A stretch of 63,797 nt of DNA, the filler included, from Reticulomyxa filosa (taxonomy: Eukaryota; Protista; Foraminifera), in NCBI GenBank assembly GCA_000512085.1. It is 13 parts of 13 records of this genome, joined end to end, with 100 filler letters (N's around TTAATTAATTAA, not from the genome) between each part and the next. Parts side by side here need not be neighbours in the genome. Positions count along the whole stretch, not along the records: positions 21,045 to 35,110 come from ASPP01001568.1; 12 more parts are not named here. One strand, written 5' to 3'. The position numbers were made by a program, and so were the translations under genes. Positions 21,045 through 34,687 of the stretch are shown piece by piece. The notes under the pieces were generated by a model. That model was not told where the DNA came from and made no database searches. It worked only from the letters and a program-made list of their open reading frames with translations. Positions within the stretch are counted from its first letter, which is position 1. Each line of letters begins with the position of its first letter.

Positions 21045-24000
21045 AATTGCATATTCAATTTGTTTCATTGGATATATTGTTCGTTGTTTTAATATCCATG
21101 TACACATTTTCATCATTTCTACATAGGCTGTTTTATCCAAATTATCATCCTTTTTCTCTTTTCCAATTTTTTTTACAATACATTCAACAGATGTTTGCAA
21201 AGTGATTTCATCAAAGGTGCCTCCTCTAACATCAATCCATGCACCTTGTCCAATGCAATAGCGAGCAATATCCCAATGTTTGTAATTTATTGCCAAAAGC
21301 AATGGAGCGTGTCCATATTCATTGAATGCATCATTAATATCAATGCGGTGATGTTTTAATGCAGACACCAATTGAAACATATTACCTGATTGTGCTGATT
21401 CACATACAATATTATAACGACCCTTGCGTTTGCTTGTGTCGGAAAGATTGTTACAGCAAGGGTGTAGAATCGCATCATCGACATGCCATTTCTGTTTTAT
21501 CGGAAAACCCCATTCAATGGCTTGTTTATTGCAGCATTGTAGCAATGTATTAAAGGCAGCAGAATTGATATTATTGTTATCATTAGAATTAAATTGAATA
21601 CGAGGATTATATGTCCACAAACCAAATGCCAATATTTCCATTTCAACATCATTCAATTGACTTTGGTGTGGATATTTCTTACCAAATTTGTTCTTTTTCG
21701 TTGATATATTCCTTTTCAGTACGTGCATTACAACACGCTGCCACATATTCTCTGACATGCTTGACAATATTCGGATTACTTCATTTCTCTTTTTCAAAAT
21801 TTGTAAACAATATTTCGTCAATAAATACAATTGCTTATCATTCAATTTTATCACAAATGTTTCAAGTGTATTCACATGCGGATAGAGAATATTTCCATTT
21901 TCATTATTGAGATCATACACCAAATATTTAAATACTTTAGTCAGTTGTTTTCTTTTCAATTTCAATGCCAGTATTTTAAGTGTTCTCATGCATGAAGTAC
22001 GAACATAAACATCCTCATCCTTGAGACCATAGAGCAAATATTTAAATGCTTTATTCATTTGTGTTCGATTTAATTCCAATGCTACTCCATAAATTACAAT
22101 GGCACATGAGTACTTATGTTTATCCTTGAGTCCATCAACTAAAACTTTGAAAGCAGTATTAAACTGTTGTCCATTCAACTGCAGCAAGAACTTTTTCAGT
22201 TCTTTGACGCAATATGAACGGATATATCCATCTTCGTCTTTGGGTTCATTGCATAACAGCATAAAGGTATAATTGAATTGTTTTTCCTTGAATTTTGTTA
22301 GAACTGTTTTAAGCGATTGTTTCAATGGTACACGAATGCAAGCATTTTTATTAATTTTGTCTAATTTCATTAAAAGTCTCTCAATGGAATGTGCACAATA
22401 TTTACGAACAAATCTATTTTCCTTTTCGTCATTCAAGCCCTCCATCAAATATTTTAAAGTATTATTCAATTGTATTTGATTTAATTTCATTGATATGCTT
22501 CCAAGAGATTCTGCACATGACATTCGAACTAATATATCTTCATTCTTGTTATTCAATTTCTTTATCATAAGTTGAAAAGCAATATTCAATTGATTTTGAT
22601 TCAATTTTTGTGTGATCTTTCCAAGTGATTCTGCGCATGAATATTGAACACTTTTGTTTTTATCTTTGAAACCACTAATCAAATAGTCAAAGGCATTATT
22701 TATTTGTTTGTCATCCAATTGTAATAAGAGTTTTTGAATTGTCTTTGCACATGAATAACGAACATACTTATTTCTATCTTTCGATACTTTCGTCATTAAA
22801 CATATAAAGACAGTATCTAATTGTACTTTATTCCATCGTATTGGCGCAGCTGCCAAAAAGTTAACGCATACTTTGCGCATACGCTGTTGATTACTGTCTA
22901 TTCCGTTTATCAAATATTGGAAAGCAGAATCCAAATATTCACCCTTCAATTGCATCAAAATGTTTTTAATGTAATCTGTATATCGACAATTAGCCACTCC
23001 ATTTAGTCTATCCAGAAAACATTTAAAAGCGCTGTTCAATTGTCCCTGGCTCCATTTTATTGAAAGTCTTATTAATAATTTTACACACTCTTGATGTAAA
23101 GCTATGTTTTTATCATTCAATCCATCTATCAAACATTCAACAGAATATTTCAATTGTCTTTCATTTAATTTCACCGAAATGTATTCAAATGCTCTTACAA
23201 AAAAATCATTGCTATGTAATTTTTTGCTTAAATGTCTGAGAACAACATTCAAGTTTTCTTCTTTCATTTTCATGAATATTCCTTCAAATGCTTCTGCACG
23301 TAATTTTACTGTTATGGATGAAAGTAACTTTACACATGAGCACATGTCGTTTTTACAATTGAGCTCATTCATGAAAATCTGAACAACATCTTTTTCTTGT
23401 CTTTCATTTAATTTTGATGCTACTTCTATAAGTGTTTCTGCAACGCTCGTATGAATGTCTTTTTCAGACAAAGCGGTCGTTAAAAATTTGAAAACACCAT
23501 CCAATTGATCTTCTTTCAATTTCATTAATATTGCTCGATATAAATAGCTATGGCCATGAAATCCACGTCGTAAGGTAAGTTCGAGACATTGTAAAACAAT
23601 GTCTGATGTTTCTGTCGAGATACACAAGTATGATAATAAATACAATCCATCATCTATTACACGTTTCCAACGATTATAATAGGTATGATATCCATTCTGT
23701 GGTTGCAATATCCTGCTTTTAAATTGTATGAGTTGCTCGATAATACATGAGTGAATATCTGGGTGAACAAGAACATACTGCAAAGTGGGTAAATGCATTG
23801 TCATCACATTATTTAATGGCCTAATCAACATTGGTCCAGAATTGTGGATATAATCTATGTCTTTGTCAAAAGTGATCCAAGCAATGAGCCATGATTTGAA
23901 TGAATGAATGATTGTTCTATGGCAATCTCGGAGTTGTGATGAAAGAAATGGGCTTTCTGCATCTGCTTTGCAAGCATCCAAACAACGAATATATAACATC

Positions 24001-25721
24001 GTTTGATGAATAGGAGTGAGTTGAGGTGGTGAAAAATGTAACAACTTCCAAAAATACAATAAACCAGATCCTGATGAATCTTTTCCATTTTCAATATTGT
24101 CATATAATATTCCAGCCATAAATGGTATCATCATTGCATATTTTGGAGTGATTTGTTCATTAATTAAAATAGAACATACTTCTTGATGCTCTTTTGTTTC
24201 ATTTGATTGATATAAACAATTCACTAAATAATAAGCAGAAAACCATTCTTGAAATGTCAAATGAGGAAAATATACAGAGTCAATTGGATAAAGTGGATTC
24301 ATTGATTCTTGTCCTTGTAAAAATCCAAATGAATGAATTCGAGACCATTGAGACATTACTGATATATGCTCACGTGGATATTTATTATTAATAATATATA
24401 ATACCTTTTGTTGTATTTCACAAGATATGATTGCTTGTCCATATTTCAATCCTTCCCATGCAATACGTGACAAATAATCTATTTCCATTTCGAATATACT
24501 GAACATATTTTGTTCATTTGGTTTATCTTTTGTTCCATTGAATTTTATCCAATTCCATTTCATATAGCATTCTAACAATTTTTTATATAGCTTTGATATG
24601 GATATATTATTTAATTCATCTAACTCTGATTTATTTCGGACATCTTTTTCCTCTTTTTTTTCTTGTTCTTTGATCGTTTGTTGTCTTGCAAAAAAACAAA
24701 GCAATCGCAAATACAATGGAGTGTGACTTAATAATTTCAAATTTGGATTATTGTTCAGTTTTTTTATCAATATTTCTGTTTGACAATGATTATCATTGTA
24801 ATCATTTGAAACATTTTGAAAATAAGCATAAACATATTTTCGAATATCCTGTGATTGAAATCCAATGACATTAAACAATCTTGGTTTTCTCAAATATGAA
24901 CACATTGCATTAGGACGACTTGTGATAATTATACTATAATTTATATTCCCAGTACAATACTGTAACCATTGTTGCATTCCAGGTTTCTGGTTTAATTCAT
25001 TTGCAATTTCATCAAATCCATCCAATATTAATAATCCATTCTTTGAATACACAATATTCGTATTATTTTGATTCCATTGTGGAATATTCAATTCTGCCAC
25101 TATTTTTGACCATTGATCTTTTATATTATTAGTATTGTTATTCTTTTTATTATCAAAAATATGAGAAATTTTCCGAAATGGTATGTGCAACAACCATTGA
25201 AATCGATTATTCCACATTTGATCATTTGCCCATAAATATGCAATTCTTTGTGTCAATACACTTTTTCCACATCCTGCTTCTCCACGAATACTAATATGTC
25301 GTACTTCTAACTCACCTTCTTTTGTATTCCAAATATCTTGAACTTCCAATTCGCCTTCTTTTATATTCCAATTGTCTTGTTCTTCAATTGTTTCTTGCTC
25401 ATCATCGTAGATAAATGGATAATCTAATGTATTTGTACATTTCCCTTGTCTTTCTTCATTGTTTCTCATTTTTTTTGTAATTTGTTCTTTTCTTTCTAGA
25501 AACCGTTTTTGATTCAAGAGAGCCAATCGGATATAGCAAGCATTAATAGATTGTTCGTGATCATCAAATAAAGGTACGAGCTTATCTTGAGATTTATAAT
25601 ATTCTTTCAGTTTGGCTTTTGTTGCTTCAAATGTTGCGCTATCGCTTCTTGCAATCCTCTTTTGGAATCTCTCCAAATCTTTTTCAACAAGAAATTTTGT
25701 CACACACCGATTCTTATCCAT
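21045..25721 (-). CDS. NACHT (STAND) NTPase with HEAT/ARM-like repeats and C-terminal ankyrin repeats (NLR-like); 3' end cut by the contig end
   Basis: Uninterrupted ORF of >1550 aa. Walker A GEAGCGKS, Walker B LLILDGFDE, IITSRP, TPLYL and FPHLTFQEWFSAYYL. HEAT-like repeats of ~39 aa (D....VR.SCAESLG.I) and ankyrin motif GHAPLLLAINYKHWDIARYCIGQGAWID. Confidence 0.9.
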
Positions 25722-26099
25722 TTTTCTCAAGCTGATATGCGATTTTATTGAGCTCTTTAAAATGGAATGCCCTTTTTTTTACAACGAGTTTCACGTTTTT
25801 ATAAAATGTGGATTGTTAGACTTATCTTTTTGTGGAATTTTTGCAAGTTACTTTGCATAAAAATTGATTTGTAATATCCAAACAACGAGAAGCTTTTTAA
25901 ATTTCCAATATTGTCCCGTCATTTCCAATAGTTGTTTTCTTTTTCAAGCAATATTGACCGAAAATTGTTTATTCTGACTAATATCAAAAACAGGATGTTA
26001 TTGGTTTAATTTGAAATTAAAATGTGTCATGAAAAATTTATAAACATTTATCAATTTAATTATGTAAAGATTTGTATTTTCAAAGCAAAACTTATGATT

Positions 26100-26300
26100 A
26101 CCATTTGAAATATCCGTATATTTCAAATAATTATAATATCTTTCAACTTTTGTATCTTCTTTACCAGGTTTAGTCCCACAATCAAATTATATTACCACTT
26201 GAACATGATACAATTGTTCGACCGTCTGTAAAATATTTTATATCATTCACATAGCTTGAATGTTCTTTCAATGTTTGATAGTGTAAATTCTTGCAAAGTT
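26100..26300 (-). pseudogene. WD40 remnant
   Basis: QTLKEHSSYVNDIKYFTDGRTIVSCSSGNII*LWD. Confidence 0.6.
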
Positions 26301-26619
26301 TTGTATTTGGTTTAAAAGTAAAGAAGTTTTTACAACTCATGTTTATTACTGACTCGCCCAACAACACATATCTTTTTTTGATTTTAAAAAAACTGTCTTT
26401 CGTGGCATTTCTCTTTAAACCATATACCCATACCAAATTGTTTTTATTTTTCATTACCTACTTAGTAATTTACTAGTTTTAATTATCTTGTGTTATAAAT
26501 ACAAATAAAGTTAAACAAATGTCCACACTCTGCGCAATAGAATTTTTTTTGAAAGAAAGAGGAACTTTTTGTTTAGTTTAAAAACAAGGTGTAAATTTGA
26601 AATTATTCGTCAAATAAAC

Positions 26620-28633
26620 ATGTCCGAGACCACATTATTATCCGTTACTAAAGCGGTACGAGAAATGGTCTATAGTTGAGATTCGATTAAAGAAAAAGCC
26701 TTTGGCACTGTGTCCAAGAGGGGAGAGAAACAGAGTGACAAAAAACAACTAAAAAAAAGACTCTAATGTCCAAGAACTGGCGATGAAACATGGACTAAAC
26801 GTAATGAACATAACGTGGGAAGATAATGCAAGATATAAAAATTCAGCATTTGGGTAAGAATTGAAAACTATTTATAAATTATAAATAAAAAACTGGATGG
26901 TTTTATTTTGTACATGAAATGGTTTGTGGTTGAAAAAAGGCCTTGCATAAGTGACATGACACTGGAAGTAGATAAAGAGTTGATGCCCGTGATTCGGAGT
27001 CCAAACTATAGTGACGAGACATGGGACGTGAGTATAGACAAGATTGCAATGGTGGTGGGAAATGAAAAAAAAGAGGGAAAATTGAAAACGGTGCCATTGA
27101 AGGAGTATTTGGAACATTTTGATCAATACATGAGCAAACCGAGTTTCAAAGGTCCATTGAACCTGTTGGCAAACGACTCAACGAACAAACAAAAAGACAG
27201 TCATGTTATTATGTCCAGTCAAGCTTGCTTTCTGCCCGTTCAGCAAGGCCATCAAACCAAGTTTTCTGTGGCGTTGTACAACTATCAATCGACTCTAAAA
27301 AATCCAAAGGTGCTTGTCATCGTTTGCACCAGTAAAGGCTCTTCCGCACAGATCATTCAAGGTTTTTATTTTTTTTTAATTTTATTGTTTACCAATAAAT
27401 TCTTTCATTACTTGGATATATAGGATCAACGCAAACGTTATATTTTAACAATCAAGGTAAGTTTGTTTTTTGTTTTTTTTTTAGTTTAAAAAAAAAGGAA
27501 GGGTCCTCACTTACAAAAAAAAAAAAATTGTGAGTATATATATATTGTTTGCAAAGGCACAAAAGCGCAATTTGTAGCGCAACGATTGAGTGATAATCGT
27601 CATGAAAGAGGGGTGAATCTGGAAGGTGAAATGAGTAAGGAAGAAAGACAAAACAACGTAGTAACGATCATTCAAGTTCCTTTAAAACAAAAGGAAGAAA
27701 GACGAGCAATAATCATTGAAGTTCCTTCAAAACAAAAGGCACAATGTAAATGGTCACGATATCAACTCTTACCTCGACCAGTCGACAGCAGACTGGGATC
27801 AGTATTCATCGAGAAGGAGGAGGAAGATTTGGATGTCGAAGCAGCAATTGTCAAAGTTTCAAAACATGTTTTGTTTTTTTTTGGTGATTGATTGATTGAT
27901 TTGTGTTTTTTTTTGTCGAATTGGAGAGAAATAGATGATCCCAATTACTCCAAAGTGCAACAAGGACTGTAAGAAAGAATTGGTATTAAAAGTGCTGCGA
28001 AATAGAAAAATGTGTTCCGAATGCAGTAAAAGTGTTGATGCGGGGTCGCCAATGTGGCGTTGTCCCGAGAACGGGATAGCAGCGCATAAGTGGGACTACT
28101 ATTACCTGTGTGAGATATGTGGGACAAAACAATTGGAATGGAACGAATTGAATGACATAAATGACATTGAAAGGGACACCAAATTCCCCATTCGTGTCGT
28201 CGTGCAATTTTATCAGGCCACCAGCAATGGACAGGTCAATTCTTCTATCATGTCTGCAATTGCGCACATGCTGAAAGCATCACAACAGCAGGCCGATTTT
28301 GTTGGGTCTTTGGTCACACACACTAATCCCGATCGACCTACCGAGTGGATTGAACAAAAAAATAATGAAAATGGTGATGATGATAATAATAATGAGGGGG
28401 AGGAGAAGGAGGGTAAGGGTAATGATAATGGTAATGGTAATGGTAATGGTGATGGTGGTGATGATAGTGGTAACATTATTGCTGCAAAAGTGATTTCACA
28501 TTTACAAAAAATTTTTGGTGAAGATTGGAAAAGTTATTTTCTCAATTTTCAAACACAACCGCTGGATAACGCCACTTTGAAGGTGGTCGACAAAACAGAT
28601 GATTTGACAAAAGTACTTGACAAAAGTACTTGA
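26620..28633 (+). CDS. Uncharacterised 'WEDxxR-GPxISDMTL' family protein with an inserted Zn finger and a SAM-like tail; 6 exons (26620-26674, 26760-26853, 26940-27361, 27424-27456, 27557-27855, 27935-28633)
   Basis: All five GT-AG introns are phase-consistent. The spliced protein reads HGLNVMNITWEDNARYKNSAFGPCISDMTL..MPVIRSPNYSDET..VGNE..DSHVIMSSQACFLP..YNYQS..LYFNNQG..QRLSD..IQVPLKQK..DVEAAIV..IERDTKFPIRVVVQFYQATSNG. Confidence 0.75.
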
Positions 28634-29361: not shown

Positions 29362-30030
29362 CTATTGCATTTGAATAGTCATTTCTTCTTCACTTAACCA
29401 TTCACTTACTTTCGTTTTCATGTGCGTTGACAAAAATATTTTCCAATCCCATCCTCCAATTATGTGCACATATGTGTTGTCTTCACTCAATATTGCAACG
29501 CAACCACACAATGGACTGGGTAAAGTATTTTGGAATATTATCCATTTGTTTTCTCGAATTGAATATTTGTGCACTGATTTTGAAAATATCTCACAAATAA
29601 TGCTGCCATTGCATCCACCAAAGAATAAGATGGCGTCATTGACATATACATATGCATAACTATGGGATTGTGCAATATTATCACAAACAGGTATTTGATG
29701 AAATTGAAAAGTGTTGTTATCTTCACCATATTCAATTGATAATCCCATTTTTTGACAAAACAATAGCATTTCGTAATTTCTTTTCTTTTTTTTTTCTTCA
29801 TTTATTTTTATTATTTCTTGCCCTTGTCCATTTTCTGGCTTTCATACAAAGCAATGATAAAATGTCCAATCATCAGTTGGTAAAGTATCATGTTTAATAA
29901 ATTGAAATGTATTTAAATAAAACACGCTAATATTACTTGACCTATATGCGATAAATAACAAATGATTATTGATTCCATCAATCACTGCACGCGCTCCTTG
30001 ACAGTTATCTTTATCTCTTCCAATTTGTTG
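29362..30030 (-). pseudogene. Kelch-like family pseudogene (5' part decayed)
   Basis: GARAV, MLLFC..GLSIEY.EDNNTFQF, ILFFGG and VHIIGG match the intact Kelch paralogues. Frameshifts lie upstream of 29769. Confidence 0.8.
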
Positions 30031-32712: not shown

Positions 32713-34687
32713 ATGTCATCAGTATATGTTCTTTTAGTTGGCTCCACCGGAGTGGGGAAGTCTGCACACGTTCGGTTATTGACAGGGAATACAGGTGTGG
32801 TAGTGAGTAACGGAGCACAGTCGTGCACGACGCAGATGTCTGTGTATGCCGGCAGTGACGGCTACAACTACATTGATACTGTCGGTGCAGAGGACAGCAG
32901 AAACCTGAGCGACGCGTACGTGTTAAACCAAGCGCAAAGAGATTTGTACAAGCGCAAGGTGAAACAAGTGAAGGTGATATGGATCTCCAATCCGAACGAA
33001 CGAGAGTCATCCACGATTCAGAGGCAAGCCAAATACATTGGAGCTATCGATAAAGACATTTGGAAATCGGTTTTAGTTGTTATCAGAGAGCCTGGTTTTC
33101 AACTGGAAAGCAAAGCCCAAGGCATTCAAACGGCAATTAAAGAGTATTCCAACACAACCGACAGCATCACAGTTCCTGTTATTGGCTACTTAAACATTGA
33201 TTGGGTCAAAGACTCCCCAGAGTACATTTTACACTTAGGTTAAACATTAAAAAAAATAAAAAGTATCAAACTTTTGTAACAGTAAAAGATTGTATGTGCA
33301 CATACATACATGTATATATTTTATTTTTTTTGGAGCCAGTATTGACGACTCCAAAAAAAAACGTATGACTGAAAACAGATATAGAAACGAGAACTAAGCT
33401 TGGCTATCTCAAATCGAATGAAGTTCGGAGTCTGGTGATGAAGAAATTGAACGAGTTGCAAACAACGGAGCTCCACTTTGAAGAGAAGAAATGCAAAAAT
33501 TGCAATTTGATAGGCGACCCTCGGTTTTCGGACGATGTCAGCTGCCACTTGCTTGCAACGAAGGTGCACCAAAATGGAGTGGAGCCAAAGCAAGTGCATT
33601 TCGGCACGAAAAAGGCAATTCATGCACCAAACTACGAGTTGGAATGGTATCATCCAGACGACTCGTTAGTTCACCCAGGAGACAAAGAAAAATTTCACGA
33701 CAAATCGACTCGCACTGAAACGCAGCACAGCAAAGAAACGTATCTTGAACACGAGACGACGCAGACGAGACAAACAGTAGTTGATGTCAAGCGACGACAT
33801 CGAGGAACAAAGTTTGTAAGCTGCTGTCCCAAATGCCAGAGTACGAATTATAACACTTATACGCCGCCACGTTAAGCATCTGATCTGATATGCACATGAC
33901 AATCTTAGAATTTGTTGAACATATGTCTGCACGTGCAAAAAAAAATAATAATAATAATAACATACCTCTCCACAGAAGATTTTTTTAAAGCAATAGCTTT
34001 TATCGTGTTATCTTGTGGCGCCTGTAATCAAAATTTTTCGGTCATCGTGTTGCGTATAAATGTGGCAATTGTCAAAAATTATTTCATACAACGTGTGGAA
34101 GTAACTCAGGTGTGAACATGTGCACCTATTGCAATCAACGAATCGATTCGGAGGGATGCGACTTTGAGATGGTACATGTTGACGTCCATGTTTGCTGTGG
34201 CAAATCTAAAGAATCCATTGGATGTTTAAGAAAATGCTCTTCTTGCAGACAAACCGTGGATAAACGTGGATGCACGATCCAGACGTGGCATGTATGTTGC
34301 GGAGGAGATGGAAAAAGTGAGGGCTGTTGCTACAGATGGAATTGTTGTCAAACCAATATTACTTCAACTACGAAAGGCTGCAAACTTAAATGTTGCAATG
34401 GAGAGCCAGGCTCAAAGGGATGCAAACAACGGTATTCGTGCTGCAAGCAACCTCTTGGCTCTGAAAAGGCATGCAAGGAAGAATGGACGTGCTGCAGCCA
34501 AATAGATCCGACTCCTGGTTGTAAGTTGCAATGGCCATGTTGCCAAGCAATTGTGTCTTTGTACAGTCCAAATGACGAAAAAAACGCTTGTCAACAAGTT
34601 TGTAAAATTTGTGGAGGCATATGGGGCAAATCTGATGGTTGCACCAATGCGGCCAAACACGAGTTCGAAGAAAAAATTGACTCATAA
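32713..34687 (+). CDS. AIG1/GIMAP-like (TRAFAC) P-loop GTPase with a His-ladder / hydrophobic tip / Cys-ladder tail; exons 32713-33238, 33379-33870, 33976-34687; 1-nt frameshift in the T run 34034-34038
   Basis: G1 GSTGVGKS, G2 SCTT, G3 IDTVG, then CKNC..GDPRF..CH. Both introns are phase-consistent GT-AG. Adding one T restores NFFGHRVAYKCGNC in frame with the Cys-rich ORF 34112-34687. Confidence 0.8.

Follow-up and report, generated by a model that had tools for sequence, protein, structure and literature searches.

A GIMAP/Toc34-like GTPase of Reticulomyxa filosa and its homologues carry a putative zinc ladder of nested His–Cys3 rungs

In the Btk-type finger, a single local module of 30 residues, His–Cys3 ligation is provided by an H...aromatic-x-CC-x7-GC pattern, and in CHORD domains (those of RAR1, CHORDC1/melusin and Rex3/REXO1) one His–Cys3 site is enclosed by an outer Cys3 site, which a terminal His closes; the zinc sites of both are intrachain, and Kaur and Subramanian are said to have described a CHORD–Btk relationship in 2018. 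Nesting is also found in the DnaJ cysteine-rich domain, where the first motif pairs with the last along a β-hairpin. Among GTPases, those of the GIMAP/Toc34 type dimerise, and GIMAP/AIG1 and Toc33/34 proteins possess a T/N-x-x-D G4 motif, C-terminal helices and a membrane anchor; members of the dynamin superfamily and the GBPs combine a head with an out-and-back stalk and a membrane-facing tip, the stalk being a helical bundle of fixed design. CHORD itself is elongated, built of short pairs of antiparallel strands with two C3H zinc sites, and CHORD domains have a role in protein–protein interaction (PMC12129344).

The gene described here lies in a window of 63,797 nucleotides (the whole stretch of R. 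filosa DNA that was analysed, filler included), and its three exons encode a GTPase head, an outgoing strand of spaced histidines, a tip and a returning strand of cysteine units (Table 1). The initial annotation had counted exactly ten His, with spacers of 6, 9, 7, 9, 6, 7, 9, 7 and 15 aa, and exactly ten units of the form (CC or CxxC)..[GA]C, with linkers of 3, 5, 5, 5, 3, 5, 7, 3 and 11 aa when read backwards; both series were reproduced, as was the terminal His at 34658, whereas the basal motif given as CKNC-x10-C is actually CKNC-x13-C. The C, C, D, R, C and H of this basal site are invariant in alignments of 38 and 40 sequences. Set against each other in antiparallel order, the His spacers and Cys linkers of the window protein co-vary strongly (Pearson r=0.94, permutation p=0.0035; Spearman 0.80, p=0.017, without the longest pair), compared with r=-0.47 in the parallel register. 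The covariation noted at the outset stands, except that a third 3-aa linker, which precedes a CxxC unit, opposes a 7-aa spacer rather than one of 6. The terminal His is the probable fourth ligand of the basal CxxC..C site, as first suggested, and 60 of 76 homologues have a His no more than 30 aa beyond their last Cys; it is missing in a mainly foraminiferan subclade (P0013, P0035, P0047, P0061, P0062 and relatives), where the basal site must therefore close differently and some members end in an extra Cys.

Table 1. Coordinates of the ladder gene and its parts, counted along the window
Feature	Position	Strand	Basis
Whole gene, three exons	32713-33238, 33379-33870, 33976-34687	+	
Exon 1: TRAFAC-class GTPase domain	32713..33238	+	ORF, Pfam, PDB profile and fold matches
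Intron 1, GT..AG, phase 1, inferred	33239..33378	+	Identical boundaries give a colinear protein in third copy L005
Exon 2: GTPase end, basal Cys, His strand, tip start	33379..33870	+	
Basal site, N-terminal half: CxxC-x13-C incl. D-x-R motif	33492..33545	+	Invariant residues in alignments
Outgoing strand, 10 spaced His (rungs 1-10)	33546..33800	+	Direct count
CC-P-K-C: N-terminal tip-finger ligands, or else innermost-rung CC	33822..33836	+	Tentative assignment
Intron 2, GT..AG, phase 1, inferred	33871..33975	+	Donor and acceptor conserved in L001
Tip: short hydrophobic stretch and C1/PHD-like finger CxxC-x12-CxxC-x4-H-x2-C, hypervariable between copies	33976..34120	+	
One-base frameshift, at or beside five-T run in tip finger	34034..34040	+	Length compared with L001
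Returning strand, 10 Cys3 units, from the innermost to the basal CxxC..GC	34121..34642	+	
Terminal His, probable fourth ligand of basal site	34658..34660	+	
Stop codon	34685-34687	+	

Splicing of the first intron would yield a product that corresponds, residue by residue, to the third R. filosa copy, L005. A frameshift at this junction (with an acceptor at 33339, or mini-introns of 16 or 22 nt) was considered and is unneeded, since the 33239-33378 intron fits L005; the frameshift correction assumed at the outset is thus reduced to one missing base in the tip, where 47 nt separate the tip Cys pairs in the window copy versus 48 nt in L001, the single break that remains. L001 is a separate contig that bears the one close relative found with the Cys-rich piece, R. 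filosa RFI_25312 (96% identity); it is 94.7% identical to the window at the DNA level, and has a one-base frameshift of its own, a different one, located in an A-run some 35 nt further along. Because its flanks are identical to those of the window (0/127 and 0/421 differences), L001 probably represents the second allele or else a copy made very recently, even though the gene itself differs between the two, most of all in the tip. Two frameshifts, one in each copy, might indicate that the window copy is a decaying pseudogene, but both fall at homopolymer runs, a common place of assembly errors, every ladder ligand is intact in both copies, the changes outside the tip comprise 21 silent and 20 replacement, and an alternative in-frame acceptor of intron 2 at 34109 (33870-34110 splice) skips the tip finger and restores an open frame; we consider decay unlikely.

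Profile and predicted fold both support a GIMAP/Toc34-like assignment for the head, in agreement with the GIMAP-like GTPase originally proposed. Exon 1 contains G1 (GxxxxGKS), a G2 Thr, G3 (DTVG), a conserved Arg after the next strand and a divergent G4, and matches Pfam MMR_HSR1 at 6e-6 and AIG1 (PF04548) at 0.017, the latter short of the curated cut-off (14.9 bits for the window exon versus 27; best family member E=3e-6). A family profile searched against the PDB gave GIMAP4 as best match (4e-10), along with GIMAP7 (1e-9), and the fold model of a homologue resembles Toc33 (Z 16.0) and GIMAP7 (Z 14.9), with MFN2 (Z 11.9) and SynDLP (Z 11.4) more distant. By these measures the head is a TRAFAC fold nearest to GIMAP/Toc34, with G1, G2 and G3 (G1 in 67/76 and DTxG..D in 64/76 homologues), and a near-invariant Arg (R159 of P0089) would lie, by analogy of position, where the GIMAP/Toc34 families carry their dimer Arg. 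Unlike GIMAP/AIG1 and Toc33/34, the family has no T/N-x-x-D G4, the strand ending IIVxK without the Asp, and neither the C-terminal amphipathic helices nor the transmembrane anchor of GIMAP were found; the His/Cys ladder forms the tail in their place.

With the GTPase exon as sole query, 171 cluster representatives were recovered, and profile searches added more. They come from foraminifera (Nonionella, Elphidium, Ammonia, Reticulomyxa), many Glomeromycota, Endogonales, Jimgerdemannia and marine plankton assemblies, while a search for a phage homologue found none. Their common layout is GTPase, CxxC..D-x-R..C-H, His strand, tip, Cys units, a basal CxxC..C and, in most of them, a final His. Paralogue expansions are seen in foraminifera and Glomeromycota. 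The ladder, itself invisible to Pfam searches, is the hallmark of a GTPase family that is related to GIMAP/Toc34 and has expanded in foraminifera and in arbuscular mycorrhizal fungi. Public gene models frequently disrupt it; those for two members (Cetraspora, L002 206-2146; Jimgerdemannia, L008 2001-4147) place false introns in uninterrupted ladder frames and hide several Cys units. A 16-rung member on a Tara metagenome scaffold (L006 2807-5311, GC 32%) has its His and Cys halves in the same frame with stops between them at the tip, reflecting an intron or a split gene.

Nested pairing was examined in 76 non-redundant homologues (<70% identity), whose His chains and Cys units were parsed by separate rules, with P0180 (fused models) and P0069 (truncated) left out. 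Rungs range from 2 to 16 per homologue, and the numbers of His and of Cys units rise and fall together (r=0.94, n=76): they are equal in 41 of the 76, compared with a mean of 10.7 and a maximum of 22 in shuffles, and differ by at most one in 67. The automatic parser found them not exactly equal in 35, a few homologues having three or four surplus His, and surplus His lie mostly inside the tip. As the parser was refined twice, including the acceptance of CxH for CC, we also relied on controls. Independent contrasts on the GTPase tree (GTPase part, quick IQ-TREE) retain the correlation (r=0.87), and the larger changes run in the same direction in 26 of 30 cases, which shows paired change on the tree, one of the checks put forward initially; rung number varies irrespective of clade. 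Spacing gives a register: family-wide, spacers and linkers correlate at r=0.66 when paired antiparallel from the base with the conserved first rung left out, compared with -0.06 in parallel, 0.13 and 0.19 after one-rung shifts and no more than 0.46 when lengths are shuffled within a protein, which rules out parallel or one-rung-shifted pairing. Most often a length of 7 is paired with 5, 6 with 3 and 13–15 with 9–14, and long rungs fall together in 24 of 32/37 cases (odds ratio 62). Coevolution between the strands, proposed in the initial annotation as a check, is thus seen in spacing; at the residue level, charge complementarity falls on the antiparallel diagonal in 153 standard rungs, a weak indication because kinship is not controlled.

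Three apparent counter-examples, P0199 (16 His, about 9 units), P0214 and P0011, proved to be gene-model artefacts once the genomic DNA was read. Their genomic loci, which lie outside the sample, have equal numbers of His and Cys units, 16 and 16 in L002, 13 and 13 in L008 (where one of the 13 units has only two Cys) and 16 and 16 in L006; antiparallel correlations in the two asymmetric loci among them are 0.80 and 0.81, and all four 6-aa spacers of L008 lie opposite its four 3-aa linkers. Matched counts, paired gain and loss, register-specific spacing and these three loci bear out the nested His/Cys3 pairing first suggested, and show, as a property of the sequences compared, a rung-by-rung coupling of the two strands that runs antiparallel. 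Were the Cys units instead to fold locally, as C4 sites, metallothionein-like clusters or disulfides, with the His strand an independent repeat, a content of about 30 Cys in 190 residues and a stalk that matches no PDB entry by sequence or fold would be accommodated. Local folding, however, predicts neither equal counts from 2 to 16 nor mirror-image spacing nor paired change on the tree, the units have three Cys rather than four, and CxH stands in place of CC in 13 units, Cys-to-His swaps that fit metal binding and speak against disulfides; we give it almost no credence.

Folds were predicted on natural homologues standing in for the window protein. AlphaFold modelled a natural 5-rung homologue with a mean pLDDT of 80.6, high on the head, about 84–97 over the basal rungs and lower at the tip, and placed four-residue strands of equal length at 288, 296 and 304 that are mirrored by strands at 410, 394 and 376. 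For the stalk of an R. filosa paralogue the model is weak (pLDDT 60.5, pTM 0.38), with four of five mirror strand pairs at the expected rungs. The predicted stalk consists of short strands and loops. Since the alignment for the paralogue stalk was selected for base-anchored register, and thereby leans towards the nesting hypothesis, and pairing was read from strand positions only, the models are consistent with nesting and do not prove it. Foldseek and VIA searches of the PDB with the paralogue stalk returned no CHORD or Btk match and none above Z 2.5, a blank of limited meaning because the stalk model is weak; stalk sequences gave no useful match in the PDB, nor did the stalk in the ESM Atlas.

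The same His–Cys3 pairing could in principle be made between two chains, in an antiparallel, domain-swapped dimer: covariation of counts and spacing is equally expected within or between chains, and GIMAP/Toc34-type GTPases are known to dimerise. Against this, the tips of several homologues have just 13–22 residues, which suits a simple turn, the base of the monomer model is predicted with confidence, and CHORD and Btk sites are intrachain, making interchain pairing very unlikely. We propose instead, with a probability of about 0.87 for zinc as the metal and for the three-dimensional contacts, and by analogy with known Btk and CHORD chemistry, that the tail is a long antiparallel hairpin of a single chain. 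Each outgoing His i would join Cys3 unit i, counted from the C-terminus, in a His–Cys3 zinc site of Btk/CHORD type, with a short two-stranded sheet between adjacent sites and the basal CxxC..C..H site locking the rod onto the GTPase. The window protein would hold 11 Zn in the ladder and probably two more in a tip finger, and rungs gained or lost as pairs of His and Cys3 would set the length of the rod.

The initial annotation described the rungs as nested Btk-like fingers, and the Btk-type ligand pattern of His, CC and C is indeed present (327 CC units, with an aromatic residue two before the CC in about 89% of standard rungs); Pfam BTK (PF00779) matches 9 of 40 stalks weakly, at best with E=1.8e-4, and below the curated cut-off in the case examined (14.1 bits versus 24). 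Btk is a local finger, however, whereas His and Cys3 of a stalk rung are separated by all the inner rungs, up to several hundred residues. The annotation left out the nearest known nested site, CHORD, whose nested C3H sites and terminal His closure resemble the proposed base of the stalk; CHORD differs in having two sites, in tandem repeats, where the stalk has 2–16 nested His–Cys3 sites in one hairpin, the stalk spacing CxxC-x13-C-H differs from that of CHORD, and a CHORD (PF04968) match was sought in 40 stalks and found in none. The DnaJ domain shares the nested pairing of motifs, but consists of two C4 sites from CxxCxGxG repeats, with no His strand and no ladder of variable length. Because CHORD and DnaJ are already nested, neither the His–Cys3 site nor the idea of nesting is new; what is apparently undescribed is a telescoped ladder of variable length on a GTPase, the literature searched, with incomplete coverage, holding no description of such a ladder, of its paired gain and loss or of its placement on a GIMAP/Toc34-like head. 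Repeat proteins nearly always extend head to tail, while here each unit is split over two distant parts of the gene whose halves still change together, which raises the question of how such a repeat expands.

The tip of the window protein, given in the initial annotation just as a central tip, carries 8–9 further Cys/His beyond the ladder in a C1-like finger pattern. This CxxC-x12-CxxC-x4-H-x2-C pattern occurs in both R. filosa copies, and three homologues have related fingers in their tips; the Pfam matches are below cut-off (C1_1, E=0.02; C1_2, E=0.014–0.03, the latter in homologue tips). From its residues the tip can be read as a C1-like finger (via CPKC) or a PHD-like finger (via the next CxxC), and the ladder retains ten rungs under either reading. 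Homologous tips have a CP-x-C or C-x3-H start similar to CC-P-K-C, and in L001 a 12-nt in-frame deletion takes out a Cys of CC-P-K-C, another Cys having arisen a few codons further on. Divergence between the two R. filosa copies is 16–18% in the tip, 2–4% in the other coding sequence and 4.5% in the introns (tip versus introns, about 17% versus 4.5%, p=4e-5), and the finger core has nine replacement and no silent changes with all ligands kept, compared with 20 and 21 elsewhere (p=0.006). This divergence and the 9:0 ratio suggest, for two sequences only, that the tip is under diversifying selection or exchanges with another paralogue. Family-wide, tips switch between hydrophobic hairpins and fingers; a strongly hydrophobic 11-mer is present in 34 of 76 tips versus none of 70 His strands, and many tips are short and polar.

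Such anatomy leads us to propose, tentatively and at slightly less than even odds, that the rod is a stalk presenting an exchangeable tip, be it a hydrophobic hairpin or a C1-like finger, to a membrane or to a foreign target, and that the GIMAP/Toc34-like head forms dimers on binding GTP, with cell-autonomous defence as the likeliest setting. The zinc analogue of the dynamin/GBP stalk envisaged in the initial annotation would be an architectural likeness only: both have a head and an out-and-back stalk, and many homologue tips are hydrophobic as a membrane-facing tip might be, but dynamin-superfamily and GBP stalks are helical bundles, in contrast to the short strands and loops predicted here. 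Alternatively, a real ladder may store or sense zinc, or act as a housekeeping scaffold with CHORD-like docking of proteins, given that CHORD domains mediate protein–protein interactions (PMC12129344) and that short, polar tips are common. We find this role rather doubtful in view of a rung number independent of clade, tips that alternate between hydrophobic hairpins and fingers, an R. filosa tip that has outpaced its introns, and paralogue expansions in foraminifera and Glomeromycota. The ladder might represent a new class of repeat protein that grows by nesting and not in tandem, with every added unit contributing a His to the outgoing strand and a Cys3 to the returning one; the result would be a length-tunable zinc rod of 2–16 rungs, the stalk of a widespread and undescribed eukaryotic GTPase that acts in defence or at membranes through a fast-evolving, interchangeable tip, for which we see not quite an even chance. 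Should the tip be a recognition module under diversifying selection, these would be candidate cell-autonomous immunity proteins in lineages with poorly known defences. A modular, metal-stitched rod of adjustable length would also be a useful design element.

Other ORFs neighbour the ladder gene in the window. A long NLR-like ORF with NACHT, HEAT repeats and ankyrin (21045-25730, -) is cut by the edge of the sequence piece, and short WD40 (26182-26454, -) and Kelch (29362-29769, -) repeat pieces are probably exons or gene fragments. Three successive ORFs (26908-28633, +) look like exons of a single gene for which Pfam gives no convincing family, and at the start of the third ORF is a cluster of Cys and His similar to a C1-like finger.
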